From NCBI RefSeq assembly GCF_000143415.4, contig NW_003314272.1, forward strand, positions 1,306,628 to 1,370,627: a stretch of 64,000 nucleotides of DNA, given 5' to 3'. This DNA comes from Selaginella moellendorffii. Lineage: Eukaryota; Plantae; Lycopodiophyta. Below, piece after piece: positions 1 to 52,726 of the stretch (its first letter is position 1; each line of letters opens with the position of its first letter). The position numbers and the translations under genes were made by a program. Below the pieces are notes generated by a model, which was given only the letters and a program-made list of their open reading frames with translations, did not search any database and was not told where the DNA came from.

Positions 1-1115
1 CGCATCTATTGAGTGCAATTCTCAGCAGGGCCAGCCATGGGCAGGCGCTGGATTTGAGGAAGACCCTGTCGGTGTTCACATTCAACAGCATAACCGGCGC
101 CCTCATGAGCAAACGGTACCTCAGCCACGATACCGGTGCGGCTAGCTCAAAGGAGGCCATGGAGTTCAAGAATTGGTTAATCGAAGTGTTGCAGCTTGTT
201 ATGGAGCCCTCTTTGAGCAACTTCGTGCCTTGGTACTTGAGATGGCTTGACTGGAAGACTCCTGGATTGAGACGCCTTCATGCAAAGCTGGATAAGTTCT
301 TGCAAATGGTTGTGGAAGAACACAAGAAGAGCACCCGAGAGCAGAAGGACTTCCTTGACATCCTGCTCAAGGCTTTCGGAGAGGAGGAAGCTTATGCAAA
401 AGCTAATCTGTTGGTACGTGCGTGAGGATGAAGAACAAGATAGTGCTTCTGACATTCATATTCTTTCTTTCAGGACTTGATGGTGGCAGGAACTGAAACT
501 TCCGTCACTGGGACCGAGTGGCTTATGGCAGCAGTGATCCAGGAGCCCCGGATCCTGAAAAAAGCCCAGCAAGAGCTTCACGATGCCGTGGGCAACAGGC
601 GGATGGTGCAAGAATCAGACCTCTCCAAGCTCGGCTACCTCGACGCCATCATCAAGGAGTCACTCAGGCGCTACCCAATAGTCCCGATCTACATCCGCGA
701 GTGCCAAGGCCAAGCGTCAAAACTCGGGGGCTACGACGTCCCAAAAGGAACCATCGTGATCGTCAACTCGTGGGCGCTGGGAATGGACCCCGTGGTGTGG
801 GAGAATCCCACACAATTCTTGCCGGAACGCTTCCTCGCGAGCTCCATCGACATCAAAGGCCAGGACTTTGAACTCCTTCCATTTGGATCTGGGCGGAGGA
901 GATGCCCAGGGATGCCCTTGGGCCTAAGAACCATGAAGCTGCTCGTGGCAAATCTCATACATGGCTTTGACTGGAGTGTGGAGCCTGGGAAGATCCAATC
1001 CATGGAGGATTGCTTCAAATCTACTTGCATCATGAAGCATCCACTGCGGCCAGTGGTTACTCCAAGGCTGCACAAAGATGCCTACACTACCCAAATACAT
1101 GATTTCTTCATATGA
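1..1115 (+). CDS. Cytochrome P450, CYP71 clan (A-type), copy 1; 5' end lies outside the window; exons <1-413 and 474-1115
   Basis: GT-AG intron 414-473 at the A-type position just before the I-helix; motifs AGTET, ESLR (ExxR), PERF and heme FGSGRRRCPG; open to TGA 1113-1115. Near-identical to 13745-14840. Confidence 0.93.
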
Positions 1116-1509
1116 TAAATTTTAATTTAGCTTTTTGCGAGATCCAAATGTACAATTACAAAATTATATACTAATATTAGTGTAGTGGAATTTTGGTAAT
1201 TAATATTAACGTAGTGGAATTTTAGTACCTGTCGGATTGATTTCAATTTAAACCATTCACTTGAGCTAGGGTTTTTGGATTAATTAATATATACATTTTT
1301 TATATTCCCTTTTTCATATCCCTAAGGAGTGTTTGGATTTGGGATTTTGGTTTAGATTTAACTTTAGTATCATCTAGATCTAATTTTTTCCATTTCCTTT
1401 CTTTTATTTATTTCTTTTAAAATTTTGGTTTAGATTTAACTTTTCCATTGTTTAGATCTCCTTTTCCTTTTAGTTTTTTTCACTTCTCTTCTTTTACTCT
1501 TTCTTTTTT

Positions 1510-1721
1510 ATTCATCTTCATAGTAGAGCAGTAGTTTTCTTCTCTTTTGACTCTGGAGCAATATTCATCTTCATAGTAGAGTAGTAGTTTTCTTCTCTTT
1601 TGACTCTGGAGCAATATTCATCTTCATAGTAGAGCAGTAGTTTTCTTCTCTTTTGACTCTGGAGCAATATTCATCTTCATAGTAAAGTAGTAGTTTTCTT
1701 CTCTTTTGACTCTAGAGCAAC
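1510..1721 (+). repeat. Tandem repeat, 4 x 53 bp, spanning the gag start region of element A
   Basis: Unit ATTCATCTTCATAGTAGAGCAGTAGTTTTCTTCTCTTTTGACTCTGGAGCAAT. Present once in element B (~8905-8955, -) and in the 54 kb remnant. Confidence 0.9.
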
Positions 1722-2469
1722 ATTTGATGCAATTGCTTGATGCTATATGATTGCAATTGAACAACCAAACTTAGTTGATGGCGGCATTCATGGCATGTGG
1801 TACAACTCCTCCTACTCTTGATGCTAATCCTCACGTTCGGCTGGAGTTCTTTTATGGGAATCCTAGAGATGATGTGTACCATTGGTTCGATCATTTCACG
1901 ATGATTGCTATATATCATTCTTGGGATGATGCTCGACGTTTGCATGAATTTCCCATGTGTCTCCAAGGGATGGTGTTGGAATGGTACAATGGTTTGAGTG
2001 CAGCCACTCGTAGGGATTGGAGTGTTCTCCCAAACATCTTCAAACGCGTTTACAAATATGCTGATGATTGTGATGATGCCTTCTAACAATTGCATCGTTT
2101 TTGTCAAAGGCCATCTGAGTCTATAATGCAATTTGGTGTTAGTTTCTGAAGCCTCTTGCTTCATGCAGAGTTAAATATGTTGAAGCGGATCAAGTTGGGA
2201 ATGTTATAGCTAACACTTCATCAAGATCTTGTTGAACTTGTGCATGCATTTGCTCCAACCACCCTTGATAATGCTCTTCGCTTGGCACAATGTTATAAAA
2301 TATCGCCTTTTCCACTTCTCGTTGCATGTCCTTTAGCTCCACTTTCTGTGGGCAATGGTCCTATTTCAATGAAAGTTGATGTTGCTGCTGCTCGAGTCCA
2401 AAGACAAGTGCGAGGATGTGGTCGTAGTTATGATGTTCATTGCTAAGTGTGTGATGAAGTTAGTCACAC

Positions 2470-2937
2470 TGTAGTGTATATGATCATGGGATGAGATTTG
2501 GATATACTGTCACCGTGGATCCTTGGAACCTTAGGGGATAAATAGGGATAAAATAGCCACTAAGGGCTCTCTCATCAAGCAATTGCCCCAGTTAGCTTAA
2601 GAGGAGAAAGATAAGGTGTGCTACATGTGGTATTAGAACAAATGGCACGGAAGGATTGGTACATTCAGTGCGGAAATGGAGGTGTTGGTTCCTCTTGGCT
2701 TTGGTTCCTTTTAGCTCAATGGGGGTTGTTATTCAATAGTCAATAAGGACATTGACATCTCTGAAGGGGGGGTGAGTGTAGCACATATGATCATGGGATG
2801 AGATTTGGATATACTGTCACCGTGGACCTTTGAAACCTTAAAGGATAAATAAGGATAAAATAACCACTAAGGGCTCTCTCATCAAGCAATTGCCCCTTTT
2901 CCAATTGGCTTAAGGGAGAGAGATAAAGTGCATTACA
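2470..2937 (+). mobile_element. Complete TRIM (terminal-repeat retrotransposon in miniature), 468 bp, nested in element A gag
   Basis: LTRs 2470-2625 and 2777-2937 (TGTAG...TACA); PBS-like TGGTATTAGAAC (tRNA-iMet type) at ~2628; PPT AAGGGGGGGTGAG; TSD CACAC/CACAT; non-coding ~150 bp interior. Confidence 0.9.
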
Positions 2938-4253
2938 CACATTTATCGACGTTGTTAGTGTTTTTCAAATTGGCAACCTCCATTTCTTGGATGGAGAATT
3001 TGGCATCAATAATGTTTTGTTAGTGTTATTACAGTGGAAGGTTTGGACACCAAGATGCATCCGGGAAACGAGGAATCACCCAAGTAATGGAGGAACCTTG
3101 CACGAATAAGTTAGTGACCCCTCCATCTTTCTTGCAAGAGTATTATCAAGGGGTTCACTTAGCACCAGTTCATCTAGTGTTTACTTTCCAAGTTCGTTTT
3201 TATAATAAAAGGTCTTCTATTATTCTCTCCGTGTTAGTTGATACAGGTTTGAATTTATCTTTTATTGTTTGACCTGTTGCCACATATTGCCATCTACATT
3301 TGCATTGTGTGGCAGAGCCAGTTTTCATTCTTTATGGCAACGGCTGTACACATACATGTGCACTGGATGAGGTGGACCTAGTTGTGGGTATAGGCAATCT
3401 TAAGCTTGAGTTGCAGTCATTGTGGGTGGTGCCAAGTCAAACTTTTGACTTCATCCTTGGTATGGATTGATTGCAACATAATTATGCCAAATGTGACTTT
3501 GAGGCTTCTCCCCCTTGTCTCATACTTCCTTATATTTCATCCATTCCTTTCACTTCCATACCTTTTCGTCCCTTTGCTTATACCTCTACTTCAATTACTT
3601 TTGTTTCCTTATTACTTCCTCCTATGTTTCCGTGTTGTTCCACTTTTCCCTTTTCCGATCCCTTTGATAATCTTTGTATTGTAGCGGTTGACTAGTTCAT
3701 GAAAGAGTATGGCGATCTCTTTGATTTGAGGTATTGTCTGGGGCCAAGATTGCCACATGTCATCCAATTCTAACCAGGGATGCTTGTCTAATCAAAGTTC
3801 ATGTTTGTTATTAGTCACTCAAAGAGATCAAGATTTTACATGCAAACATCAAAAAGATGTTGAAAAAGGGTATTATTCTAAAGTTGTGGAGTCCTTAGGC
3901 ATGTGAATCTCATCTGGTGATAATGCTTGAAGGGAGTATTCATTTCTGCATCAATTATTATCCATTAAATGAAGTGACGATCCCGAATGTGTACCCTCTT
4001 CCTCACACTGTTGATCTTTTGGATCGTCTGGGGAGAAGTCATTGGTTCACCAAGCTAGATCTTGCTTTTATGTATTGGCAAGTACCGATGGCCGAAAAAG
4101 ATATTCCTAAGACTGCTTTTTGTACATTTTTTAGTTTGTATAAATTCTTGGTGATGCTGTTTGGTTTGTAAAATGCCCTAGCAACTTTCCAGCGGATGAT
4201 GGATGAGGTTCTTTGTGATATGCTAGAGGTAACTGCTAACTTCATTAATGATA

Positions 4254-4447
4254 TGTAAGCAACCAAAGGGAACGACTTGAGAGATGATCCATGGGGTTCA
4301 AATATAGAGGGAAAGGGCCCATGAACAAGAGTGCACCCCCTTTTCCAATCGGTTAAGGGTCTTGGGATAGTTGGGGTTAAGCGTCCTTGGGTTTGAATAG
4401 TACTGGGCTGGGTGACCTCCCGGGAAGTCCAAATTCAAGAGCTTACA
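4254..4447 (+). mobile_element. Solo LTR (194 bp) carrying a 5S rRNA-derived segment; Cassandra-like
   Basis: Perfect terminal inverted repeats TGTAAGC...GCTTACA; perfect 5-bp TSD TGATA (4249-4253 and 4448-4452); contains a 5S-like internal control region. Confidence 0.88.
4376..4430 (+). promoter_or_regulatory. 5S rRNA-like Pol III internal promoter (box A, IE, box C) inside the solo LTR; not a complete 5S gene
   Basis: GTTAAGCGTCCTTGGGTTTGAATAGTACTGGGCTGGGTGACCTCCCGGGAAGTCC matches about 47/55 positions of the plant 5S 3' half as I recall it (GTTAAGCGTGCTTGGGCGAGAGTAGTACTAGGATGGGTGACCTCCTGGGAAGTCC). The 5' half of 5S is absent. Confidence 0.85.
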
Positions 4448-4637
4448 TGATATCTTGATCCACTCGGAGGGGACATGGGAGGAACACATCCCATGATGTT
4501 TGTAAAGTGTTAGATTGGCTATGGGACGTTGGTTTAATACTGAAGAGGTTGAAGTGTGTGTTTGGGTCCAAAGACATGACTTATCTTGGGTATTATATTT
4601 CTCATGGGTTTGCAAGTTGATCCTGACAAGCTTGTGG

Positions 4638-5272
4638 TGTGAGACACAAATCCCTTAGCCCCAAAGTGGAGCCAAAAGGGTGCCATGTGGTAGTGGCCGA
4701 AGCAAAAGCCAAACAAGCATAATACATTTGGACTAAAAGCTTCGACTTGAAAAGTCGAGAGTAGGAGTGGAACTCCCAATGAAGGGCTCGAGGAACGAGT
4801 TCGAAGCAAGCAATAAGTGAATCTCTAGAAAAGGGACACAAAAGGACCAATATATAACATATAGAAGTGTCAAGATGGACCCGAGAGGGAATCCAAGGAG
4901 TTTGAGATGGACCCGAGAGGGAATCCAAGGAGTTCGAGATGGACCCGAGATGGAGTCCAAGATGGAGTCTAAGATGGAGTCCAAGATGGATCTGAGATGG
5001 ATCCAAGATGGAGTCTGAGATGGAGTTTGAGATGGAACCGAGACTGAGACTGAGACCGAGACCGAGATCGAGACTGAGTTTGAGACTGAGACCAAGACTG
5101 AGTCTGAGACCGAGACAGAGACCGAGTCCGAGTCCGAGTTTGAGTGCAAATACTAATATAGGTTGTTGGGTGAAAGCCCAAAGTGATCGGTGCAAGGGAT
5201 TCTAAAAGTATAGTAAGGAGAGTGTGGGGGTTGGACCCTAATGGAGCCAATTTGGCCAGAAAAGGCCAGTCT
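4638..5272. mobile_element. Unrelated insert, probably a partial LTR of another family, replacing RNaseH and the integrase N-terminus; contains a tandem array at 4873-5145
   Basis: Starts with TGTGAGAC immediately after RT-linker codons (VDPDKL); TATATAA at ~4851; 32-, 12- and 6-bp repeat units; host integrase resumes at ~5273. No matching CA end or TSD found. Confidence 0.55.
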
Positions 5273-6165
5273 GATGTCTCGGTTGGGGATACACCACACT
5301 TTCACAAGTGTTTATCATGCACAGTCAGACGATTTAGTGGAACAACTCGTTCGAATGTTCAAAGGGATGATCGCGAAGTACGTGAACTTTCAGCATTTGG
5401 ATTGGGATGGTTATTTGCTATCTTTTCAGTATACATATATCACAGGAGTGTAGAGTTCTATTGATGCTTCACCATATAAACTCTTGTATGGTCATGATCT
5501 AATATTATAAACGAAGCTAGGTTTACCTTTGCAATTGCCATGAGTTGCCGATACTAGGTCATGGGATCAGTAATTGATGAGCATCCTTCCACTTGCCCGA
5601 GTAGAGTCTGTTGAACACTTAAGTCGCATACAAGTGGGACAACAACAGTGCTACAACTCCCATCATCATCCACCTACAGAGTATTAAATGGATGACTTAG
5701 CGTTAATACATTTTCCGCATGGTTTATTTAAGGGGCTCCTTGCTCAATAGAAAGGACTGTATCAGATGTTGAGGCAAATTGGACCACAAGTTTATGAGGT
5801 TTGGCATGATGTCCAATAGGCCGATCCTCTAGAAATTGTGTATATGCAACGGTTGAAATGCTTTATACAAAGGGATCAAGAATAGTTGGTACCACCTATA
5901 GATCCACTAATGCCTCCTCCTAACGTTGCACTAGATCTCAACTCGTTTATAAGAGAACCTTGATAGTCTTCCATTATTCCAAGAGGAGGGGATGATGTGA
6001 GGTCTAAGTGTACAGCTATGATGCCATATACTAATATTAGCATAGTGGGATTTTGGTAGCCGTCAGATTGGTTTCAATCCAGACCACTTGCTCCTATATA
6101 TAAGCTAGGGTTTTTGGGCTAATTGATATACACATTTTCTATATTCCCTTTCCATATACCATGCA

Positions 6166-9100
6166 TATACAAAAAATATACATATCAATTAGCCCAAAAA
6201 CCCTAGTGTTCGTCAAATACTAATCCCATGACCTAGTATCGGCAGCTCATGGCAATCACGAAGGTAAATATAGCTTCGTTTATAATATTGGATCATAACC
6301 ATACAAGAGTTTATATGGTGAAGCATCAATAGAACTCTATACTCTTGTGATATATGCATACTGAAAAGACAGCAAATAACCATCCTAATCCAAATGCTGA
6401 AAGTTCACGTATTTCACAATCATCCCTTTGAATGTCCAAACAAGTTATTCTACCAAATCGCTGACTGTGGATGATAAACACTTGTGAGAGTGTGGTGTAT
6501 CCCCAACCGAGACGTCAAAACATGAAATGCCTTAGCCATAAATGCTGGACCATTATCCAAAAAAATCTATAGGAACACCACTCAATTGAGGAGGAAGTAT
6601 CTAACAGCAGTTGCAAAAGTGCTAGCAAGAGCATTAACTTCCACAAGTAGTTAGAAGCAATAATATTGCCAGCAGTCGATCGTGGAAAAGGTCCCATAAG
6701 TTCAAATGCCACCAACTCAAACGAATGGGAAACTGCAATTGACGCCAATCGTCCTTCCGCAACATAAAGGGAGTATTACAAGCTTGACACCAAACGTAGC
6801 TACGCACAACATCATGTCGCATCTCCAGCCAGTAGAAAGACTTACACAAATTCTCGGTCACATGACGATGTCCCATATACTTACCTAGAACAAAAGAATC
6901 ATGGTAAGCATAGAGAAACTGTGGAATAAGATTGAGGGCACCACTAGCCATAAATGATCATCAGGATCCATTCCCACAAAATAAAGAAGGTCGTTTTTAA
7001 GGCGATATTGAGAATGTAAATGCTAGAATGGTAAGTCATCAGTAAATCATGCAAGATTTTCAAACTTCTAGAAGCCTTTGAATCCACGGCTCAATCTTTT
7101 AAACTTTATGAACCTCATCAAGAGAAGGTAGTTCTTTTTTTGTACCTTGTGGACACTAAATGTCAAATACAGCAACCGCCAATGGCATAGAATCCTCGTC
7201 TAGAAAATCCATAGATGCTAAAACAATAGTTTCGTCAAAAATATGAGAAGAGAGCGAAGAAGGAAGAGGAGCTTGAGAAAGGGTGTCAACATCAGCCATA
7301 GAACTTCCCGGGCGATGAACAACATCAAAATCATATATCTGAAGTTTCAAAGCCCACCGAACAGTACGACCAATGAGATTCTTCGGTTTTAATAATGAAG
7401 TAATGACAACATGATCACCTTTTAGTAACGTCCAAGAACCATATAGATATGCATCAAGTTTATCAAAACCCCAAACTGTTGCTAAACACTCCTTCTTTGT
7501 CATGGAGTAGTTCACCTCTGCTAGTTGTAATGTACAGCTGATGTATGCAATGGGATAGTACTGACCAAGAACACTCGGGCTCTATTGCATCAACACACCT
7601 CCAAGACCAATATCAGAAGCATCCACACACAAAATGAAAGGTTGAGTGTACTTAGGATATGCCAAAACTGGAGGAGTCATCAATAGCTCTTTGAGATTTA
7701 TGAATGCCCGCTCACAATCCACAAACCAAATGAAAGATGACATTGATGAGTTTAGCAACACTCGCAACGGTGCAGTGCAATCAAAAAGATGATCCACAAA
7801 ACAATTGAAATACTGCACTTTGCCTAAGAAGTATTGCACATCATTCACACACTTCAGAGTAGGAAACTTTACAACAACCACATATAAACAACTAAATTTT
7901 CCATTCTACTGGAAAATCCCCTCCTCTCAAAATGATAGAAGACCATCAAAGTTCTCTTATAAATGAGCTGGGATCTGGAAGAACATTAGGAGGAGGCATC
8001 GGTGGATCTGTATGTGGTACTAATTGTTCTTGATCCCTGTCGAGGGCTAGAGCAGCTCAAGAATAAGGCTTGGTCGAAGAGGGCTTCCTCCTTTTTTTGG
8101 TTAGGGAATATTCTGCTGGAAAGGGGGTGTGTCTAGAGGTTGACAAGAGGAGGGATGGCCATTTTCTAGGCATAGCATATATGTAGAGTGGAGTAAAATA
8201 AAAAAGAAGGTTCTTGGAAAGAACCTCAAGTTCTTGGAAGGATGCCTCATTCAATAGCCTTGGAGCGCATGGAGTGAAGGTTGGCAATGTAGTGGCGACT
8301 ACAGTTGTTTGAAGAGTGCATCACAGCGAGGATCGCTTAAGATCAATCAATTTGTGTGAGTTGTCTAACTTGTGGGCAGCCCTAAGCTAGGTTGTTGGCA
8401 GAGGTCCTAGCAAAGGTCACCTACAAGGCTAAGGATGAGGCTAGGCAGCAATGATTCTCAACTTCGTTGATGTGTCATTGCCAGGAGTGACATCTTTTGG
8501 TGAGCGAAGCAAGTGTTAAGATTGTGGTAGAAGGGTGAGCACCCGGAAAAGCCAGGCTACCCTCACCAAATCAAGACTGTTCCTTCCTAGTGTTCAAGAG
8601 AATACTCCAATTCTCACAAGTGGCTAAGCTCAAACCATTGTACCACTATAGCACTATCCCTTGGAAACACGTGGGAAACTCATGCAATGTCAAGCATCAT
8701 CCCAAGAATGATATATGGTAATCATCATGAAGTGATCGAACCAATGGTACACATCATCCCTAGGATTCTCATGAAAAAATTCTAGCCAAATACAAGGATT
8801 GGCACCAAGAGCAGGAGGAGTTGTACCACACGCCATAAATGCTGTTATCAATTGAGTTTAGTTGTTTAATTACAATCACATAGCATTAAGCAATTGCACC
8901 AACTGCTGCTCCAGAGTCAAAGGAGGAGGAGATTGCTACTCTGCCATAAAGATGAATGAAAAGGAAATAGCAAAAAAAAAAAGAAATGAAAAAAAACTAA
9001 AAGGAAAGGGAGATCTAAACAATGCAAAAGTTAAATCTAAACCAAAATCTCGAAAAAAAATAACAAAAGAAAGGAAATGGAAAAAGCTAGATCTAGACAA

Positions 9101-9345: not shown

Positions 9346-10436
9346 AATATCAATTATTATATTTGATTTTATACACTCTATTAAACATTAGGAGAATTAA
9401 ATTATATAAAAATTATAATTAAGAAGATATAGTGTAATATTTTATCATTTCAATCAGACTATAATTTAAATAGTTATATTTATCAATAATATATATGAAT
9501 TACCTTATGAGTATTATTATTAATTTAATAAACTTTATAATCTTTAATTTTATAATTCAGTTTTCTATACCTTTTATTAAAATAAATTATTTTTGGAATG
9601 TTAAAGCAATAGTTGCTTAATATCTAAAATTTATTCATTTCTCATAAGGTGATTTAGAAGAATACTTTAAGTTAATTAAGTAAGTTATAAAAGACAATAA
9701 TGATAAATATTCATTTAACTAAGCATATAATGTGTTTAAAATTGTTTAAATTTAAATTTTGAGTTCACAAGTAAAATAAATTATTAAAATACTATATATT
9801 ATAATTAATGTTTAACTCTTAGTTCATATAAGTTTATGCATTTTTACATATAAGTAGTAGCTAGATGATATTTTTATATAAATAACTAAAGTATAAATAT
9901 TTATATTTTAAAGTTATTTTTTCTCACCTTATCACTTTTATAATGAAATTATATTATGTTTTTTAACAGTTACATATTAATAAATTAAATAAAATTTATA
10001 AAAACATTATTTAACTTTTAGGATGTCTATTTTATATGATGGATATTTTTTAACTATCAATATATATATATAGCTCTATAATATATATTACTGAAGTTCC
10101 TCTCAACTTGCAATGTTTAATTAATATATGATATTCACACTCAATGAAGATATTACTATTATTGTTAAACTTTATAATAATTATATTTACATTCTATATA
10201 GGCATTCTAAATCTTACTAACAATTGTATCAAAAAATTTAAATAAACACCTCTTTAACTATCATATATATAAATAGCTTTTATTGCAAGAATTATTAATT
10301 TTTACATATTTAATGTTTGTTCCTAGTTGAAAATTTTACCAAATTTCTTGCCAAAATAATATATAATTCATTAATTTTTTTCATTTGACATAGCAATTAA
10401 AGATTTTTATTTTATGGTTTTGGATGTTGTTGAGGG

Positions 10437-10858
10437 TTTTGCTACATTTACAAATTGCAATCATCACTAGTAAGTAAATACCAAAATCACTAAATCCATA
10501 ATTGTAAACTAAGTAATATAACTTGAAGGAGTGTTATTGTGTTTGTACTAAATTAGTATTAAAGGCTAGAGGAACATGGATGCTCTAAATTCCACAAGAG
10601 AAAACTGTGATAAGACAAAGTTGATGTGATTATAATTATTTACAGCATTGGTTAAGAGAGTTTAGAAATTATAAACAATAAAAATCGTTAGATAGTAAAA
10701 TATTCCAAAATATGTAAGCATATTCTAAATATACCTGCCGGACACTTTTCTGTTCAAACCTACCTGAAATTTTTGATAACGGCTTTTAAAAAAGGAAACG
10801 CTAAGACCTGAGCGACTGAGGGTGTCGCATAGCTGGGATGTGCGATGGGAGTGATAAA
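10437..10858 (+). repeat. Direct duplication of 16573-17169 (non-coding, 3' flank of the TPR gene), lacking ~165 bp
   Basis: Shared blocks such as TTTTGCTACATTT...CAATCATCACTAGTAA, AAATTCCACAAGAGAAAACTGTGATA and GCGACTGAGGGTGTCGCATAGCTGGGATGTGCGATGGGAGTGATAAA. Confidence 0.9.
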
Positions 10859-11546
10859 CCTTAGCCTCTCCGACACTGTTTGTTTGTGGAGCGTCACGGT
10901 GTATTTTAAATGTAACAAGCTGGCGTTGTTTGCGAAGTTCCCGTGCTTTCTTGCGGACCTGTGCCACTGTAATGGATGGCGTTATATGAACGATGTGTAT
11001 TCCAAACGAAACATTTCACAAAAGCCATGATTTTTCGAACAAGATTTGCCAGGCAAACAACAAACACATCAAGAAAAATACGATACCTCTCCCGTATCTC
11101 CAAGTCCGCAGCTCATGTCACTTTGGCCAAAACTCGGATTGAGACCTCGGGACGCAGGCATACTGCAAGCTTGGACGTTCCCCAGGAGCTTTGGACGGCC
11201 ATTATTGCATTGTGTCACCAGCTAGCACCGTGATGCCAATTCCGAGATCACGTCAGCAGAGAGGAGAAAAATCATGTACACTCTGCCTCAAGATCGAAAG
11301 CCAAGAAACCAGGAAAGAGCATTTAACATTTTCTAACGCTGGGCCCCTTCTATAGCTCGCCGACGCGTAGCGCCAGGAAGGCATGAGACGTGTCGATCCA
11401 CGATACACTCACCTCGTGTTTGATCCTAACCGCACGAAACTCCCGAATCTAAGAGCGAGATCCGGGGTAGAGATTTGATGAAGTGACTCAGTGGAGGACC
11501 AAAAGAATATGCTCTGGTTTGAACGCGAGAGAAGAAGCCCTAATGC

Positions 11547-11858
11547 ATGCTTCGCACCTCCAAATGGGGGCGGCTCGCGCGCGCGGTGCTCCAGTCGCAC
11601 AGCCTTGACCTCCGCGAGCAGGAGAACGCGTTCGCGAAGGTGGTGCGCGAATGCGGGCAGGAGCGGGATCTGGAGCGCGGGCGGAGGATCCATGCACAGA
11701 TCCAGGACGCCGGCATCGCCTCCAACACATTCCTGGGCAATCTCCTCGTCCAGATGTATGGCCGCTGCGGCTGCTTCCACGGCGCGCGGGCGGCCTTCGA
11801 TGCCATCCAGCGCCGGAATGTCTTCTCGTGGACGCTCATCGTCACTCGTTCCTATTGA
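11547..11858 (+). pseudogene. Truncated PLS-class PPR fragment
   Basis: VVRECGQERDLERGRRIHAQI...NTFLGNLLVQMYGRCG...ARAAFDAIQRRNVFSWT (L/S PPR motifs); stops after about 2 repeats, ~100 bp from the MTPSL stop. Confidence 0.75.
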
Positions 11859-11956
11859 AGTTGCCACCCTTAATGAGCTCCACACAAGTTCTACACATCA
11901 GAAAACTCGAAAGCTTTATTTCGGTTTGTGGATTTTAGCATGCTTCATCGCAAGAT

Positions 11957-12997
11957 CTACAGAACAATCCAAATTCCATGACCAGACTCGGCATCATTCA
12001 CTCCATAACGAGAACTAATGAAGTGGAACTTGAGGTTGTTTGGAACGCACATCTTGAGGATCTGAAGGTAGCTCACAAGCTCGGCATTGCCAGAAGCCAC
12101 AGCGTTCCTCATCACAACGTCGTAGTAATGCGTCACCTCGCGTTCCTTCTCCTGGATCATTGCACAGGTCCTGTCCACCGAGTCCTGGAACGTGTTGACG
12201 CTGGGATCCAAGAGCAACTGCAAGGACGCGATGCTTCTCAGTGGCTTTTTGGCGCGCAGCTCCGCGGGGAAGGAGATAACGTCGTTGACAAGGAGGACGT
12301 GATCGTTGATGGCGTTCTGGAGCGCCAGGTAGTCCCGCGACTCCAAATCGCTGTCTGGGAGCGCAATCTCCAGCGACATCTCGATGAATGGGAAGCAGGG
12401 GAGGAGGAAGCAATCGAGCCTCCTGCGCGCCAAGTAGCTCTCGACCGTCGACGCCGATTGTGCTAGAGAAAGGACGCTCCGGTCCATGGAGGCAGCGTAG
12501 GCCTCCATCTGCGCGACCCAGTGCGCGTACACCCGGGGAGCCATGGATGATCGCAGGCGCGGAATGAGGTCCGCGCAGAACTCGAGCGATGGATGGACTG
12601 GATCGCGATGTGGGTGTGTCCCATGGAGGATGCCCTGGAAAGTCTCCAGGAACTCCTCCCGGGGGGCGCCGCCGGGGGACTCGTCCTCGAGGAGATCATC
12701 CAGCATGGTTCCAAACCACGCGAACTTGCCGCAGAGGACGGCGCTCTCGGTGGATCCGCACGGCACGAGCATGCTCATGTAGAGCGGGATTCGCATGCGC
12801 TCCAGGGAGAGCTTTTGGGCATCGCTCATGCTGGGATTGATGAATGGGAATGCCCACTCGTTCGCGAGCTTGGCAACCAGCTTGTGGTCGGGATGCCAGG
12901 CGCTGGAGGGGATGGAGCAGCGAATGGGCGGCAAATAGAACCTCTTCAGCCCCAGGAGGTGTTCCATGGCGGGAATCTTCTCCACAGCAAGTGCCAT
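11957..12997 (-). CDS. MTPSL: Microbial terpene synthase-like protein (MTPSL), 346 aa, intronless, class I alpha-domain only
   Basis: Asp-rich DDLLED, pyrophosphate-sensor Arg in YLARRRLD, NSE/DTE motif NDVISFPAE, C-terminal RY pair; no beta/gamma domain and no obvious transit peptide; N-terminus resembles Selaginella MTPSLs (from memory). Confidence 0.93.
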   Translation of the reverse strand: MALAVEKIPAMEHLLGLKRFYLPPIRCSIPSSAWHPDHKLVAKLANEWAFPFINPSMSDAQKLSLERMRIPLYMSMLVPCGSTESAVLCGKFAWFGTMLDDLLEDESPGGAPREEFLETFQGILHGTHPHRDPVHPSLEFCADLIPRLRSSMAPRVYAHWVAQMEAYAASMDRSVLSLAQSASTVESYLARRRLDCFLLPCFPFIEMSLEIALPDSDLESRDYLALQNAINDHVLLVNDVISFPAELRAKKPLRSIASLQLLLDPSVNTFQDSVDRTCAMIQEKEREVTHYYDVVMRNAVASGNAELVSYLQILKMCVPNNLKFHFISSRYGVNDAESGHGIWIVL

Positions 12998-13302
12998 GAT
13001 CAGTAGGAGATTTAGATAATCGGGATTTTGGAGAACGACATTTTATAGTCATTTTTGTTACACTGGATCATGTTGGACATTGCTATTGGAGTGGCACGAA
13101 TTCATATCGACTTTGTACTGAATGCTCGAAAATTCTATCGCAGTGGCTCGATGGTCATTGTACATCCCAGACGAAACATCGGGCGGCTGGAATATTGAAA
13201 GAAAAGTTTCATGCTCGTGTTTTCTCACCCCTCGTTGAAAAAACTGATCGATCCATTGTATTTAAGAAGGTGGCAGTCCAGTGTTACTAGCAGAAAAGAG
13301 AG
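12998..13302. promoter_or_regulatory. Candidate 305-bp bidirectional promoter shared by MTPSL and the CYP
   Basis: Divergent ATGs at 12997 (-) and 13303 (+); CTATAAAA on - at 13041-13048 and TATTTAAG on + at 13259-13266, each about 40 bp upstream of its ATG. Confidence 0.7.
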
Positions 13303-14862
13303 ATGGATGTTGTAAGCTCTCTCCTCCTCCTTTTTATCCTGGCCGTCGTGATAATCAGCTACAAATCCAGAGTGACTTCTCCACCAGGGCCATGGGGATT
13401 GCCCTTGATTGGCCACCTCCACTTGCTAGCGAGAATGCCCCTCCACCGAGCTCTGCAATCCATGTCACAAAAGCACGGCCCCATTGTGTCCTTGAGCCTG
13501 GGAATGAGGCCAGCGATTCTCATATCAGCTCCGGCTCTGGCAAGAGAGCTCTTCACCTCGCAGGATGTGAATTTTCCATCCAAGCCATATATGAGTGTCG
13601 CAGAGCACATAGACTACAACTTTAGAAGCATCGGGACTGCCCCTTATGGCGAGTACTACAGCAGCATCCGGAAGCTGTGCCTGACGGAGCTCTTCACCGC
13701 CAGGAACATCGATTCGTTTTCATGGATTCGAAGCGAAGAGCTCTCGCATCTATTGAGTGCAATTCTCAGCAGCGCCAGCCATGGGCAGGCGCTGGATTTG
13801 AGGAAGACCCTGTCGGTGTTCACATTCAACAGCATAACCGGCGCCCTCATGAGCAAACGGTACCTCAGCCACGAGCATGCCGGTGCGGCTAGCTCAAAGG
13901 AGGCCATGGAGTTCAAGAATTTGGTATTCGAAGTCGTGCACTGTATTATGGACCCCTGTTTGAGCAACTTCGTGCCTTGGTACTTGAGATGGCTTGACTG
14001 GAAGACTCCTGGAATGAGACGCCTTCATGCAAAGGTGGATAAGTTCTTGCAAATGGTTGTGGAAGAACACAAGAAGAGCACCCGAGAGCACAAAGACTTC
14101 CTTGACATTCTGCTCGAGGCTTTTGGGGAGGAGGAAGCTTATGCAAAAGCCAATCTGTTGGTACGTGCGTGAGGATGAAGAACAAGATAGTGCTTCTGAT
14201 ATTCATATCCTTTCTTTCAGGACTTGATTATGGCAGGAACTGAAACTTCCGTCATTGGGACCGAGTGGCTCATGGCAGCAGTGATCCAGGAGCCGCGGAT
14301 CCTGAAAAAAGCCCAGCAAGAGCTTCAAGATGCCGTGGGCAACAGGCGGATGGTGCAAGAATCAGACCTCTCCAAGCTCGGCTACCTCGACGCCATCATC
14401 AAGGAGTCATTCAGGCGTTACCCGGTTGTCCCGATCCACATCCGCGAGTGCCAAGGCCAAGCGTCAAAACTCGGGGGCTACGATGTCCTAAAAGGAACCA
14501 TCGTGCTCGTCAACTCGTGGGCGCTGGGAATGGACCCCGTGGTGTGGGAGAATCCCACACAGTTCTTGCCGGAACGCTTCCTTGCGAGCTTCATCGACAT
14601 CAAAGGCCAGGACTTTGAGCTCCTTCCATTTGGATCCGGGCGAAGGAGATGCCCCGGGATGCCCCTGGGCCTAAGAACCGTGAAGCTGCTCGTGGCAAAT
14701 CTCATACATGGCTTTGACTGGAGTGTGGAGCCCGGCTAGATCCAATCCATGGAGGATTGCTTCAAAACTGCTTGCATCATGAAGCATCCACTGCAGCCAG
14801 TGGTTACTCCAAGGCTGCCCAAAGATGCCTACAACATGATTTCTCCATCTGATACGTCCTAA
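13303..14862 (+). pseudogene. CYP71-clan P450 copy 2 with a premature TAG at 14737-14739; exons 13303-14160 and 14221-14739, ancestral stop 14860-14862
   Basis: TM anchor, PPGPWGLPLIGHLHLL, AGTET, ESFR, PERF and FGSGRRRCPG are all present. Copy 1 has AAG (Lys) where copy 2 has TAG, and the downstream frame IQSMEDCFKTACIMKHPLQPVVTPRLP is still conserved. Confidence 0.85.
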
Positions 14863-15861
14863 TAATTACAACATATAAGCTTTTGTTATAATTCAATAAA
14901 TATTTGTTTATGCTGCTGAATTAACTTTGTCATATTTTTTATTTCAACAATATGATCATTCAGTGTGGCATGTGTTGGGAAGGGCATAAAAGTGGAGTTT
15001 TGGTTGAGAAGGTGGAGAGTTTGTTGGTGTCAAGTGGCTGGCCATGTAGTTAGTTGTGTCAATCTTGAAGCTATGGTGGTCACTTATAATGGAGCCTGTT
15101 GTCAATGAGGTTGTGTGTTGAGTTCCTTCTTAAATTTTGATGCACCTTTGTATACTAGAATTTTTAAAAGTTACACTTAAAAGGTAAAGATTTTCTTATT
15201 TGACTTAGATTTCTATCAGGTGACATTGTGTAGCAGTATAAAATGTGCATTGGTATGAATTTCTTTCCTATCATCTCTATTGGTAGTCATTGTTTAACAA
15301 AGGCAGCCGAAGGTAAGTCTTTTTACAAACATGAAAAATGGAATTTTTATGGCTTACAAAGGGATTCTTTGACTGTGTTCCTATTGCTGGTGATCTGACT
15401 GAGCTTAAATTCTCATGGAGGGTCTTGTATATGAAGGCTGGGAAATCGTGTTATTCAGCCTGGTCATTTCTTGGAGGTTTTCTTTTTCCTCCAGCTGAGC
15501 TTTGCTTCCTGCTAGTAAGAGGATATGAGAAACAAACAAAAAGTTTCTTTTGGAGAAACTAAACACAGTTTCTATTAATAATAATTAAAAAAATGAAATT
15601 AAAATTTGATTACAAATGAATTAGAGAAATTTTAAGAGTATTAAAATCACAATTAGAGAATAGGCTTGGGTATTCTAGATACATTCCTTCCATAAGAAAA
15701 ATTTAAAAAAAAGTAAAAAAGAGCCACAAGAGACTATAAAAAATATTTGATAAAATGAAAAGAGAAATAGCCAAGAAATGCCAGAATCTATATTAAAATT
15801 AAAAATGATCATCAAAAACATTTTATACCAAATAAAAAACATTTGGCTTCAACTCATAAGT

Positions 15862-16058
15862 GCTAGGAATGGACCTTACAATATAGGACAGCCAAAACAC
15901 TTCCATTGACATCAAAGCTCAAAACTTTGAGCTCCTTCCATGGAAAAGATGCCCTAGGATGCCTTTAGGGAATTTCATCCATGAAGATTCAATCTATTGA
16001 GGATTGCTTTAGATCTGCTTGCTTTATGAAGCATGCAATATGCTCCAAAGTTGCCTAT
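15862..16058 (+). pseudogene. Heavily deleted remnant of a P450 3' exon (same family)
   Basis: GGAATGGACC; TCCATTGACATCAAAGCTCAAAACTTTGAGCTCCTTCCA (SIDIKAQNFELLP); AGATGCCCTAGGATGCCTTTAGG; GAGGATTGCTT...ATGAAGCAT. Confidence 0.75.
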
Positions 16059-17197
16059 TAATTTAGGAAAATTATTTATAACTGAATATAGTAATAAATA
16101 AATATTATATGTCATTGATTCATACATACTATTTAGAAGGTCTAATAGTTGCCCTTAAATATGAGATGGACTAATCAATTATTATATTTGATAATATACA
16201 TGCTATTAAACATGAAGAGAACTAAATTATATAATAATTTGTTGTGCATTGCATGCAACAACACTTGGTTTGCTTAATATTAGTGTCAGTGAATAATCTA
16301 ATTAATTAATAATTATAAACATATTTATACTTTATAAATCGAGACTAATCTTATTGCATATTAACCATTAGATGATAGAATAAAAAAGATTATACTAGGA
16401 TGTGTTTAGTAAAGTTTATAAATTATAAACATGTTTATAAATTATAAATAAAAGATTAATATAAATGAATAACAACTATTGGATGGTAGATTATCTTAAA
16501 ATATTCTGGCATATTTAGATTAGATCTAGCAACTATAGATTTCTATTCTATGGTGTAGGATATTGTTAAACATTTTGCTACATTTGCAAGTTGCAATCAT
16601 CACTAGTAACTAAATACTTTTCTCAAGATTTCAAGCGATTTTACCTTTTATTTTTGTTAAAACCTTTGTTTTGCTAGTGATTAAATTACCATAAGTACTA
16701 TTTTGATGCAGGAAATAACCAATACTCGGCATGCTTGACTAAATTATAAACATCTTATATCCCAAAGTTTGACAAAGATGTTCAGAATCACTAAATCCAT
16801 AGTTGTAGACTAAGCAGTATACTTTGAAGGAGTGATATTGTGTTCATGTACTAAATTAGCATTATAGGGGCTAGAGGAACATGGAAGCTCCAAATTCCAC
16901 AAGAGAAAACTGTGATAGGACACAAAGTTGATGTGATTATGATTATTTAAAGCATTGTTTAAGAGAGTTTATAAATTGTAAACACAAATGAATAACAATC
17001 GCTAAATAGTAACATATCCTAGAATATTCAAGCATATTTTAAATATATTTGCCGGACACTTTTCTGTTCAGACCTACCTGAAATTTTTTATAACGGCTTT
17101 TAAAAAAGGAAACGCTAAAGAAGCGACTGAGGGTGTCGCATAGCTGGGATGTGCGATGGGAGTGATAAATCCAGCGAGAGCTTCGCTATGGAGCCCA

Positions 17198-29421: not shown

Positions 29422-30060
29422 ATGGACCTAATGATCGTGTTGTGCTCCTCAACTTTCATCATTCTCTTGGTTGTTTGGAGTTACAAGGTGTGCACAAATC
29501 TTCTACCAAGTCCATGGGGATCGGCACTTGCTCAGAGAAATATATTAAGTGGTGTTGTTTCAAGCCAGGAGCTAGTCAAGGAGCGCTTCACTTTGGTCAA
29601 TTTTGTCCCTTGGTATTTGAGATGGCTGGTTGGCGGATTCCCCAGCACAAAGGTGTGCATGCAAAGCTAGACAAGTTCTTGTAAAAGATTGTGGACGAGC
29701 ACAAAGGCAACACCCGGGAATGCCTTCCTTGACACCACGCTCCTCTTCTTTGGTGAGGGAACACAAGGAAACTTGCATAGAAGTGTCAAAGTTTTTTGTG
29801 GGGTTTCTTTCAGGACATGTTTGCTGCCAGAACTGATTCATCTGTTGTTCCAAGCGACTGGCTGCTGGCAGCGGTACTGCAAAAGCCTCGGGGCTTAACA
29901 CAAGCTCAAGAGGAGCTCGACAGGGTTGTGGGAAACGGGAGAATTTTGAGAGAGTCAGACTTTTCCAAGCTGGAATACCTTGGAGCAATCATCAAGGACA
30001 CATTTAGACGATAGCAGCAATCCTTGGTATGAGATTCCCAAAGGAACCACAGCTTGCTGG
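29422..30060 (+). pseudogene. Deleted CYP71-clan P450 pseudogene (same local family)
   Basis: TM anchor, LPSPWG, VVSSQELVKE, NFVPWYLRWL, HAKLDKFL*, QEELDRVVG...ESDFSKLEYLGAIIKDTFRR and EIPKGT; large deletions and no heme motif. Confidence 0.85.
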
Positions 30061-31689: not shown

Positions 31690-33227
31690 ATGGATCTAGC
31701 ACTTGTTGTGAGCTCTGCAGCTTTCATCACTCTCTTGGTCTTGTGGTTCTGGAAATCTTCCTCAAATCTTCCACCAGGTCCATGGGGATTGCCCCTGATT
31801 GGCCACTTACACTTGCTAGCAGGAATGCCCCCACACAGAGCATTCCAACGCATAGCCAAGAAGTATGGTCCTATTACTTCATTGAGGCTGGGAATGATCC
31901 CAACGGTGGTGATTTCCAGCCAAGAGCTTGCCAAGGAGATCTTCACCACACACGATCTAAATTTTGCTTCCAGGCCATACTTGGTTTCAGGTGACCACTT
32001 CAGCTATAACTTTTCTGGAATTGGAACCAGTCCCTATGGAGAGCTATGGCGAAACACCCGCAAGCTGTGTACAATGGAGCTCTTCACGGCCAAGTGTATT
32101 GACTCCTTCTCTTGGGTCAGAAGGGATGAGCTTTCTCGTACCTTGGAGGGGATTTTGAAGGACCATGGCGATGACAAACCTGTGGAGGTGAGAAAAGTGG
32201 CCAGTGTTTTCTCCTTCAACATCACATCACGAATTTTGATGAGCAAGAGGTACTTTGGTGATGAAAACGTAGATGCCCATGCCATGGAATTCAAGGAGCT
32301 CAATGACAAAGTTCTTGAGCTGGCGATCAATCCCTGCATTAGCAACTTGGTGCCCTGGTACTTGAGATGGCTGGACTGGCAGATTCCTCGCTACAAGCGA
32401 ATCCATGCCAAGCAAGACGAGTTCTTGCAGAAGATTGTTGAGGAGCACAAGGAGACGACACGGGAATGCAAGGACTTCCTCGATATCATGCTCGACTTCT
32501 TTGGAGCAGGGACACAAGGGGAGACTTACGTAAAGGCGAATCTCATAGTAAGCTTTGCAAAACTTCTCCTTGATTGCTTATTTCTTATGCTACAAATGCC
32601 CAGGAGATGTTAATGGCTGGTACTGATACCATCACCACCGTGAGCGAGTGGCTCATGGGTGCAGTGATGCACAATCCTCGAGTCATGGCCAAGCTCCACG
32701 AGGAGCTCGACAGTGTTGTGGGCAACACTCGGATGGTGCAAGAGTCGGACCTCCAAAAGCTCGAGTACCTCCAGATTGTCCTCAAGGAATCACTCAGACG
32801 CTATCCTCCGGGAGCCTTACTCATACCGCGCATCTCAAGCCAAGCAGCAACCGTTGGCGGCTTTCACGTTCCAAAAGGGACCACTCTCCTGGTGAATGCA
32901 TGGGCGATTGGAATGGATCCGGCAGTGTGGGAGAATCCCACACAATTCCACCCGGAGCGCTTCTTGGGGAGCTCCATCGATGTCAAAGGCCAAAACTTTG
33001 AGCTCCTCCCGTTTGGATCTGGGCGGAGACAGTGTCCGGGAATGGGCATGGGATTGCGATCAGTGGAGCTGCTCGTGGCAAATCTCATCCATGGCTTCGA
33101 CTGGAGCTTTGTGCCTGGGACAACGCCGTCCATGGAAGATGTTTTCTTCACTACTGCGCAGCTCAAGACCCCATTGCAAGCCATGGCGACTCCAAGGCTC
33201 CCCAAGGAGGTCTACATCAAAGTTTAG
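31690..33227 (+). CDS. Intact CYP71-clan P450 (~493 aa); exons 31690-32547 and 32604-33227
   Basis: TM anchor, PPGPWGLPLIGHLHLL, AGTDT, ESLR, PERF and FGSGRRQCPG; 56-nt intron at the same position as in the other copies. Confidence 0.94.
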
Positions 33228-51170: not shown

Positions 51171-52726
51171 ATGGCTGTGATATTTGGTGTATGCTTTGCT
51201 AGTTCCATCTTTCTCTTGGTTGTGTGGAGGATCTTGTCTTCCAAGTTGAATTGTCTTCCACCGGGGCCATGGGGTCTGCCTCTGATCGGCCATCTCCACA
51301 TGCTAAGAGGAATGCCGCCTTACAAGGCACTAGAATCTCTATCTCGGAAGTATGGTCCTATTATGTCCTTGAGGCTGGGAATGATCCCCGCTGTTGTCAT
51401 CTCCAGCAAAGACTTGGCAAGAGAGCTCTTCAACACACACGATGCAAACTTCTCCAACCGGCCATACATGATCATTGGAGACCCTCGCTATGGCTTTGTG
51501 AGCCTGGCAACTTCTTCGTATATTGGGCGGCACTGGAAGAACGTTAGCAAGCTCTACACCAGGATGCTCTTCACGGCCAAGTGTATCGATTCCTTCTCCT
51601 GGGTGAGGAGTGACGAGCTCTCTCATGTCCTTGATTTTGTCTTGAAGTCCAGTGACAGGACCATCGCCGTTGACGTGAGAGTTCTATCGTCGACATTTTT
51701 GTTCAATATCATGTCCCGGATCCTGATGAGCAAGAGGTACTTTGGCCACGGTGGGGCTGATTCTGGCGTGGATGAAGACGCGGTGGAGTTCAAGCAAGTG
51801 ACCCAGGAAGTTATGAGCTTGATCTTGAAACCTTGTGTGAGTAACTTTGTCCCGAGCTACCTGAGGTGGCTCGACTGGCAGATCCCCCGCTACAAGCAAG
51901 TCCGTGCCAAGCAGGACAAGTTCATGCAAAAGGTTGTGGATGAGCACAAGAAGACGACGAGAGAGTCCAAGGACCTCGTGGACATGGCGCTCGAATTCTT
52001 TCGAGGAGACGCACAAGCCGAGCTCTACACTAAAGCCAGCTTGTTGGTAAGAACACCTTTTTTCTTGGATAATCGTCCATATGCAATCAACTTTCAGGAA
52101 ACCCTTTTGGGTGGAACTGAGACAACTGGCGTCACTTGTGATGGATCATGGCGGCAGTGATGCACATTCCGCAGGTCTTAACAAACCTCCAGGAAGAGCT
52201 CCAAAGAGTTGTGGGAAGCACAGGAATGGTTCGAGAATCGGACATCTCGAAGCTGGAGTATCTTCAGGCCGTCATCAAGGAAACGTTCCGGCGGTATCCT
52301 CCAGCAACACTCCTCATGCCACGCACCGCCCACAAAGCAACCACGATTGGAGGCTATCACATCCCAAAGGGCACCACCTTGCTCGTAAACTCGTGGGCGA
52401 TTGGGATGGATCCGGCAGTGTGGGAGGATCCCACCCAGTTCCTCCCCGAGCGTTTCCTGGGGATCTCTATCGATATCAAAGGCCATGACTTCGAGCTCAT
52501 CCCATTTGGATCCGGTAGACGAAAATGCCCAGGAATGGCATTGGGATTGCGAGCAGTGGAGCTGCTCGTGGCAAATCTCATCCATGGCTTTCACTGGAGC
52601 TTCGTTCCCGGGATGACATTGTCCATGGAGGATGAGTGTCACAGCGTCTCTCAGCTAAAGATTCCATTGCAAGCAATAGCCGTGCCAAGGCTACCAAAGG
52701 AAGTATATGCTAATTATTTAGAATAA
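51171..52726 (+). pseudogene. CYP71-clan P450 with a single 1-bp frameshift at ~52141 in the I-helix; exons 51171-52046 and 52098-52726
   Basis: All motifs are intact (PPGPWGLP, GGTET, ETFR, PERF, FGSGRRKCPG). TGT-GA-TGG lacks one base compared with paralogous GAG-TGG (EW). Confidence 0.85.

Follow-up and report, generated by a model that had tools for sequence, protein, structure and literature searches.

The 64,000-nucleotide (nt) window analyzed here comes from the lycophyte Selaginella moellendorffii, its source scaffold being GL377576.1 (assembly GCA_000143415.2). In it, a microbial-type terpene synthase gene of the MTPSL family (positions 11957 to 12997, minus strand) and a two-exon cytochrome P450 gene (13303 to 14862, plus strand) lie head to head. 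Measured directly, the spacer between their start codons is 305 bp long (12998 to 13302), and the divergent layout that the original prediction described is real. Both genes are already publicly annotated, the P450 under the UniProt name CYP797B2. Non-seed plants make their mono- and sesquiterpenes mainly with MTPSLs, and to our knowledge almost nothing has been established about the fate of their products there. A linked P450 is a direct candidate for the step that follows the MTPSL.

The terpene synthase, the P450, and the spacer between them

The terpene synthase (TPS) gene is an intact, intronless open reading frame (ORF) of 346 amino acids (aa) with no internal stop, and its product is 100% identical to protein P0282 of the SmMTPSL family. 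The sole Pfam match of this protein is PF19086 (Terpene_syn_C_2; E = 1.4e-22, residues 91 to 286), and Pfam detected no plant TPS domain (beta or gamma) in it at E ≤ 0.01. The motifs read out by the original prediction, DDLLED (aa 100 to 105), NDVISFPAE (aa 238 to 246), and R330-Y331, align in register with the metal-binding and RY motifs of the bacterial VenA and caryolan-1-ol synthase. The same two enzymes are the best matches among its relatives of solved structure, 17 of 17 of which are microbial or microbe-derived class I synthases. The nearest proteins overall are all S. moellendorffii MTPSLs, and the genomic neighbors are plant genes (PPR, ARM, BTB, and P450). By these sequence features, 11957 to 12997 encodes a genuine MTPSL with a single alpha domain and its motifs in register, microbial in type yet plant-nuclear. 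Residues 18 to 332 align with the 377-aa VenA, and because the alignment to solved synthases begins at residue 18 a transit peptide would not fit ahead of it, in line with its proposed absence.

Identity to the SELMODRAFT_429098 and SELMODRAFT_429100 proteins reaches 97 to 98%. The next nearest representative of the SmMTPSL family is just 41% identical, so the product of the window MTPSL is not inferable from its relatives. The RefSeq model of the gene (P0283, 443 aa) is named "(E)-2-epi-beta-caryophyllene synthase-like," a name applied to most SmMTPSLs. The chain length of the substrate is not readable from the sequence either; the best solved relative, VenA, is a diterpene synthase, and a diterpene-making lycophyte MTPSL exists (PMC13118282). 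The sesquiterpenoid derived from farnesyl diphosphate that had been put forward would be a guess at the product.

The 443-aa RefSeq model joins the final codons of the MTPSL to the antisense of an adjoining PPR-like fragment, which lies directly 3' of the gene (11409 to 11885; plus-strand ORF, 11547 to 11858). The splice joint of this model is absent from the contigs of four sequencing runs, and contigs of the paralogs continue unspliced through the TPS stop codon.

On the other side of the spacer, exon 1 of CYP797B2 (13303 to 14160, plus strand) comprises 286 codons and includes the PPGP hinge; its public protein is P0281. A 60-nt phase 0 GT..AG intron follows (14161 to 14220), and a contig of run X1 is spliced across it (joint, 14159/14220). 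Exon 2 extends from 14221 to an in-frame TAG (14737 to 14739) and encodes the AGTETS I-helix motif, the ExxR and PERF motifs, and the FGSGRRRCPG heme loop. Beyond the TAG lies what appears to be a former coding tail of 40 codons plus a TAA (14740 to 14862; TAA, 14860 to 14862), homologous to the C-terminal strands, the region of substrate-recognition site 6 (SRS6), of intact paralogs. Pfam PF00067 matches both exons, and all expected signatures of the P450 fold are present (SPPGPWG, AGTETS, ESFR, PERF, and FGSGRRRCPG).

The P450 is of plant origin. Among solved structures, its best matches are CYP76AK1 (E = 5e-50) and CYP76AH1, its database relatives are CYP93C and seed-plant CYP71/75/736-like proteins, and CYP797 is a large Selaginella family. 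Together with the spliceosomal intron, this bears out the earlier assignment to the native plant CYP71 clan. TPS-P450 neighbors are common in bacteria and fungi. One might thus suppose that both genes arrived from a microbe in a single ready-made operon or cluster, all the more as the MTPSL is microbial-type and a TPS-P450 pair is recounted for Dictyostelium in a preprint on Marchantia (10.64898/2026.07.16.738752). A P450 with plant CYP71-clan relatives, a GT..AG intron, and a large home family in Selaginella was not co-transferred with the cyclase; we reject this scenario on the grounds of clan identity and intron and consider it extremely improbable.

The original prediction took the reading frame of CYP797B2 to 14862, and the frame does continue past the TAG for 40 homologous codons to that point. 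Codon 459 is nevertheless a stop here, where the paralogs designated A, C, and D in this window have AAG, ACC, and ATG, respectively, and CYP797B17, the P450 of a related unit (U1) on scaffold GL377675.1, has AAG. The TAG removes the final 41 residues, which are present in A, C, D, and CYP797B17, leaving CYP797B2 without the full C-terminal part that should follow its heme loop and L helix. Both public models end at the stop (...WSVEPG): EFJ29873.1 (P0281) at 458 aa and XP_002968757.2 (P0280) at 414 aa. In CYP76AK1 and CYP76AH1, approximately 28 structured residues follow the aligned stop point. In P450s, these residues form the last beta strands and SRS6, and because of their loss the truncated protein is probably inactive. 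Two further differences set CYP797B2 apart from CYP797B17: 15 nt are missing, in frame, from its membrane anchor, and a 10-nt deletion alters its last codons.

The spacer between the two start codons has a GC content of 41%. On the minus strand, a TATAAAA box (13041 to 13047) precedes the MTPSL ATG by 50 bp, and TTT(T)ATAGTC recurs in each of the three unit spacers that were aligned; on the plus strand, a TATTTAAG box (13259 to 13266) precedes the P450 ATG by 44 bp and is identical in U1. The TATA-like box facing each gene that had been reported earlier is therefore present on both sides and retained in the paralogous unit; both boxes occur together in just 0.65% of shuffled spacers. The start codons are 305 bp apart here and 247 bp apart in U1, in each case within the 1 kb that delimits divergent pairs sharing a bidirectional promoter. 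Compared with U1, the P450-proximal 193 bp (13110 to 13302) are 89% conserved and the TPS-proximal 112 bp (12998 to 13109) are rearranged. The earlier notion of one bidirectional promoter is not supported by these comparisons, as each gene has its own TATA-like core and conservation is limited to the P450-proximal part. The sequence fits two closely spaced core promoters, and a shared regulatory element in the spacer is possible.

A duplicated unit, its decay, and its transcripts

The pair belongs to a unit of approximately 3 kb (11843 to 14863) defined by blastn homology to U1 and to a unit upstream on GL377576.1. Its boundaries fall 114 bp past the TPS stop codon and 1 bp past the P450 stop codon, and it is at exactly 11843 and 14863 that the contigs of paralogs, from RNA and DNA alike, part from the window sequence. 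Homology across this whole interval indicates that the two genes were duplicated jointly. The unit occurs four times on two syntenic scaffolds, GL377576.1 and GL377675.1, and each copy has decayed differently.

Unit 1 lies on GL377576.1 just upstream of the window, with a pseudogene of the MTPSL and an intact P450 of 500 aa (paralog A). Its MTPSL pseudogene was located on L006, a sequence fetched from GL377576.1 that matches window positions 1 to 8839 in reverse orientation at 100%; it occupies L006:9538-10580, 0.7 to 1.7 kb upstream of window position 1. It carries six indels (-21, +5, -10, +1, -10, and +1), is 97.4% identical to SELMODRAFT_429098, and is annotated merely as a 148-aa fragment (P0003). 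Unit 2, on the same scaffold, is the window copy (11843 to 14863), with an intact MTPSL and CYP797B2 truncated at codon 459. Each of the GL377576.1 units has thus lost a different partner. On GL377675.1, the TPS of unit U2 is intact and its P450, annotated at 348 aa, is broken, and in U1 (L001:2204-5066) both genes, the TPS and CYP797B17, are intact. The two scaffolds share DHHA2, lipase, FPN1, and EamA genes in the same order, with 97% identity over 11 kb, and GL377675.1 would represent the second haplotype or, alternatively, a segmental duplication of recent date.

Between the window unit and U1, identity is 98.4% in the TPS, 70% in the spacer, 95% in P450 exon 1, and 92.6% in exon 2. The TPS copies have a ratio of nonsynonymous to synonymous substitution rates (dN/dS) of 0.26 (Fisher P = 0.006), and the P450 copies one of 0.32 (P = 3e-5), in a comparison that left out the partial copy A, which was misaligned (dS > 1). 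Ratios of approximately 0.3 indicate purifying selection on both genes, which were thus constrained for most of the time since the duplication. The synonymous distance itself (dS) differs two-fold between the genes, at 0.039 in the TPS and 0.089 in the P450, and no two of the three intact TPS copies are markedly closer to each other than to the third. Taken together, these distances suggest gene conversion among the TPS copies or a mosaic origin of the unit.

Two direct repeats (9349 to 10858 and 16174 to 17169), 82 to 100% identical and approximately 6.1 to 6.8 kb apart, flank the unit; the segment between them contains the PPR fragment, the MTPSL, CYP797B2, and a 3' remnant of a P450. They look like the footprint of a tandem duplication, and an LTR-like (long terminal repeat) capture is also conceivable. 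We considered capture of the unit by a transposon and set it aside, since there are no terminal inverted repeats and the direct repeats, at a spacing of approximately 6.3 kb, fit tandem duplication better.

To look for transcripts, we compared positions 11400 to 15400 with contigs of three RNA-type runs (X1, X5, and X11) and of one DNA-type run (X2). The RNA-type contigs cover both coding regions and none extends over the spacer (13008 to 13275) or the flanks; X2 partly covers the same spacer interval and has no contig over 14737. This pattern of coverage, together with the spliced joint in X1, is how RNA would behave, and we treat X1, X5, and X11 accordingly. MTPSL and P450 gene types are found in the same RNA-type assemblies, and most contig variants match U1. 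Others are closer to the window's own P450, here called B: three X1 contigs (13774 to 14090, 14532 to 14710, and 14681 to 14863) differ from the window at 0, 0, and 3 positions, where U1 differs at 12, 9, and 28. Both B-like and U1-like copies are therefore transcribed and spliced. In addition, a contig look-up returned no match for contigs encoding the window TPS, P0005, or P0006.

At the site of the stop, the B-like contigs in X1 and X11 read GGG AAG where the window has GGC TAG. It follows that a near-identical CYP797B2 allele or copy without the stop is transcribed; no such AAG-bearing copy is present among the annotated members of the 90% cluster. Given stop-free transcripts, the TAG may be the null allele of one haplotype, a very recent lesion, or an assembly error. 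Contigs of X5 and X11 retain the 60-nt intron that is spliced in X1, which points to intron retention or to some carry-over of DNA. The retained intron contains an in-frame TGA.

These transcripts bear on the idea that CYP797B2 is simply a dying pseudogene beside an MTPSL that acts as a solo volatile-terpene synthase, in which case any functional pair would be U1 on GL377675.1. The TAG at 14737 to 14739, the 15-nt anchor deletion, and the 10-nt deletion relative to U1 are what such a gene would accumulate, and the public models accordingly end at 458 and 414 aa. SmMTPSLs characterized so far yield ordinary mono- and sesquiterpenes in vitro without any P450 (PMC7826640 and PMC6779861). A dN/dS of 0.32 between P450 B and its U1 counterpart, however, implies constraint for most of the time since they diverged, and AAG-bearing B-like transcripts occur in two runs. 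We consider this explanation unlikely.

MTPSL-P450 adjacency and a possible functional coupling

We inspected the genomic context of seven distinct SmMTPSL loci, with representatives drawn from an exhaustive HMMER search; the sample is small, and pairs within it may share descent. A P450 adjoins the MTPSL at three of the seven (two of six once the query locus is set aside). At the query locus (the window, L001, and L006), the two are adjacent and head to head. At L002 (GL377566.1), a degenerate P450 in convergent orientation is separated by 313 bp from the MTPSL, which shares 41% identity with that of the window, and at L005/L008 (GL377664.1) a head-to-head unit of an MTPSL (36% identical) and the 5' fragment of a P450 occurs twice in tandem, followed by a further partial P450. 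Most partner P450s at the sampled loci are pseudogenes. P450s make up approximately 1% of genes, and a P450 neighbor at two of six loci, though these are six loci only, is more than expected at that share.

Two of these loci merit a further remark. The region L005:6500-13300 on GL377664.1 is a second, much older, and heavily decayed case of the head-to-head layout. L002 and L009 (GL377671.1) share HECT, LTP_2, PH_TRF2_HOY1, and polyphenol oxidase genes in inverted order, and their MTPSLs are 70% identical; the degenerate P450 beside the MTPSL is kept at L002 only, and a PP2C gene occupies the matching position at L009.

The reading that we prefer, with a probability of about 0.5, is that the window holds one copy of a plant-assembled, divergently transcribed MTPSL-CYP797B unit that was duplicated as a block and has since evolved by birth and death, and that the two genes are functionally coupled. 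Under this model, the MTPSL and CYP797B would be transcribed divergently from separate TATA-containing core promoters 250 to 300 bp apart, with the short spacer helping to co-regulate them. Block duplication would have been followed by birth and death of copies at a structurally variable locus on GL377576.1 and GL377675.1. The cyclase would make a terpene scaffold from a prenyl diphosphate, the chain length being left unspecified, and an intact CYP797B (paralog A, CYP797B17, or the AAG-bearing B-like allele) would oxidize that scaffold. In the window copy, the cyclase would have to act by itself or rely on a P450 provided in trans. Coupling is a reasonable hypothesis that now leans mainly on the intact U1 unit, with its TPS and CYP797B17, and not on the window copy.

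Several observations weigh against this model. As assembled, the window copy is not an intact two-enzyme module, since its P450 is cut short by the TAG ahead of its claimed end. The TPS in the RNA contigs of X1, X5, and X11 is U1-type, and the window's own TPS variant was seen in none of them; the run data are assembled contigs that record presence without expression levels and from which minor variants can drop out. The TPS-proximal half of the spacer is unconserved between units, and in U2 an insertion of approximately 400 bp lies in its TPS-proximal part. The P450 partner has decayed in two of the four units as well as at L002 and L005, and the TPS has decayed in one unit. Such decay of partners in several units means that selection has not kept both genes intact side by side. 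No P450 lies within 10 kb of the MTPSL at four of the seven sampled loci, namely L003 (a four-copy MTPSL array), L004, L007, and L009. Finally, the window sits within a tandem array of CYP797 genes, where a P450 is locally likely to be a neighbor by chance.

Independent decay of the partners and the loci without a P450 are also what neutral hitch-hiking would leave behind, whereby an MTPSL landed or was duplicated beside a member of the P450 array and unequal crossing-over copied the neighbors, with no common pathway and two independent promoters. The CYP797 array includes copies C and D and two remnants without any MTPSL, direct repeats flank the unit as tandem duplication predicts, and the two-fold gap in dS would reflect mosaic histories of the two genes. 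Chance proximity accounts less readily for an adjacency that recurs with MTPSLs just 36 to 41% identical, with a different P450 family, and in both head-to-head and convergent orientation. Two of six other loci with a P450 exceed the approximately 1% gene share, both genes of the unit are under purifying selection, and both are transcribed in the same samples. Hitch-hiking is a possibility that we take seriously without regarding it as the probable one.

In its more specific form, the coupled unit would be a mini-cluster built in Selaginella, in which a horizontally derived cyclase and a native CYP797B that oxidizes its product share a co-regulating spacer of approximately 300 bp and have spread as a unit; this we advance only tentatively. 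If true, this would make it the first such pair in plants with an MTPSL as the cyclase, convergent with the TPS-P450 pairs of bacteria, fungi, and Dictyostelium. The pair consists of non-homologous biosynthetic genes that are physically adjacent, 305 bp apart, in a unit present four times. TPS and P450 are the only biosynthetic classes in the window, and the strict definition of a cluster used by genome miners asks for at least three enzyme classes.

TPS-P450 pairs are a hallmark of seed-plant terpenoid clusters (for example, rice momilactone and the tomato terpene clusters), and Boutanaev and colleagues reportedly surveyed such seed-plant gene pairs in 2015. As in those clusters, the Selaginella TPS lies beside a CYP71-clan P450, blocks have been duplicated, and pseudogenes are frequent. 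The seed-plant enzymes, in contrast, are beta-alpha or gamma-beta-alpha synthases with 12 to 14 introns, whereas the MTPSL is intronless and alpha-only, and the Selaginella locus has just two enzyme classes.

The SmMTPSL family of S. moellendorffii has been known since 2012 (PMC6779861), and eight of its members have been assayed (PMC7826640). The window gene shares species and family with them, as well as a length of approximately 350 aa, zero or one intron, and DDxxD-type and NSE/DTE motifs. It differs in forming, with SELMODRAFT_429098 and SELMODRAFT_429100, a subfamily at most 41% identical to any other representative. Outside Li et al. 2012 and Jia et al. 2016 (PNAS), a full-text literature search turned up no account of an MTPSL paired with a P450 in Selaginella, and the family literature that it covered contains no mention of P450 neighbors of SmMTPSLs.

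The closest parallel is the MpMTPSL2-MpCPT5 mini-cluster of Marchantia polymorpha, which has a working bidirectional promoter (Wei et al. 2026, 10.64898/2026.07.16.738752). Here, too, a non-seed-plant MTPSL lies head to head with what may be a second pathway gene, and in Marchantia a short intergenic region serves as the bidirectional promoter. The Marchantia partner, however, is a cis-prenyltransferase that acts upstream of the cyclase, whereas the Selaginella P450 would act downstream; the spacer there is 1.5 kb compared with 0.3 kb; and function there was proven by knockouts and reporters, whereas the Selaginella pair is known from its sequence. The same preprint states that no such terpene mini-cluster had previously been reported in plants and names a Dictyostelium TPS-P450 pair as a microbial analogue. 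As recounted there, the pair of Dictyostelium discoideum has a bidirectional promoter and converts discoidol to discodiene (10.64898/2026.07.16.738752). By that account, a single-domain microbial-type TPS and a P450 diverge from a short spacer, as they do in Selaginella, but Dictyostelium is an amoeba, its P450 belongs to an unrelated family, and modification of the TPS product by the P450, demonstrated in Dictyostelium, is hypothesized in Selaginella. In another lycophyte, Huperzia serrata, P450s of the CYP781 family have been linked to HsMTPSL1, whose product is a diterpene, by co-expression (PMC13118282). Both cases propose that a lycophyte MTPSL feeds P450 tailoring enzymes; the CYP781 candidates come from co-expression and not, as in Selaginella, from physical linkage.

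Should coupling hold, plants would have rebuilt the microbial cyclase-plus-P450 layout from a foreign-type cyclase and a home-grown P450, which bears on the origins of clusters. Should it fail, the locus would caution that neutral processes can place a TPS beside a P450 inside a tandem array and multiply the arrangement. The four copies, each decayed in its own way, provide a natural series in which selection for the pair may be set against selection for one good copy of each gene per locus.

Further P450 copies in the window

The remaining genes of the window encode PPR, TPR, RFC-like, ARM, and BTB proteins. Five further P450 copies or remnants are present, as the original prediction counted, but only A and C are intact, D having a frameshift and the remaining two being remnants. 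The 3' two-thirds of paralog A, a CYP797B gene (P0279), lie at 1 to 1115 on the plus strand, head to head with the frameshifted MTPSL pseudogene upstream. On the same strand, an exon 2 remnant (15851 to 16037), seen in repeat families D8 and D11, lies 1.2 kb downstream of CYP797B2, and a degenerate remnant with several stops is found at 29422 to 30011. Paralog C (31690 to 33227, plus strand; P0153, 493 aa) is an intact CYP797-like gene 54 to 64% identical to CYP797B2, and paralog D (51171 to 52726, plus strand) is CYP797-like with a frameshift early in exon 2. Neither C nor D adjoins an MTPSL: a hidden Markov model of ten SmMTPSLs run against the six-frame translation of the window gave no match below E = 1.7 for a second MTPSL or remnant beside C, D, or the fragments. 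We found no public gene model for D, which is probably a pseudogene. Its frame changes near 52142 to 52151, just after the I-helix motif.

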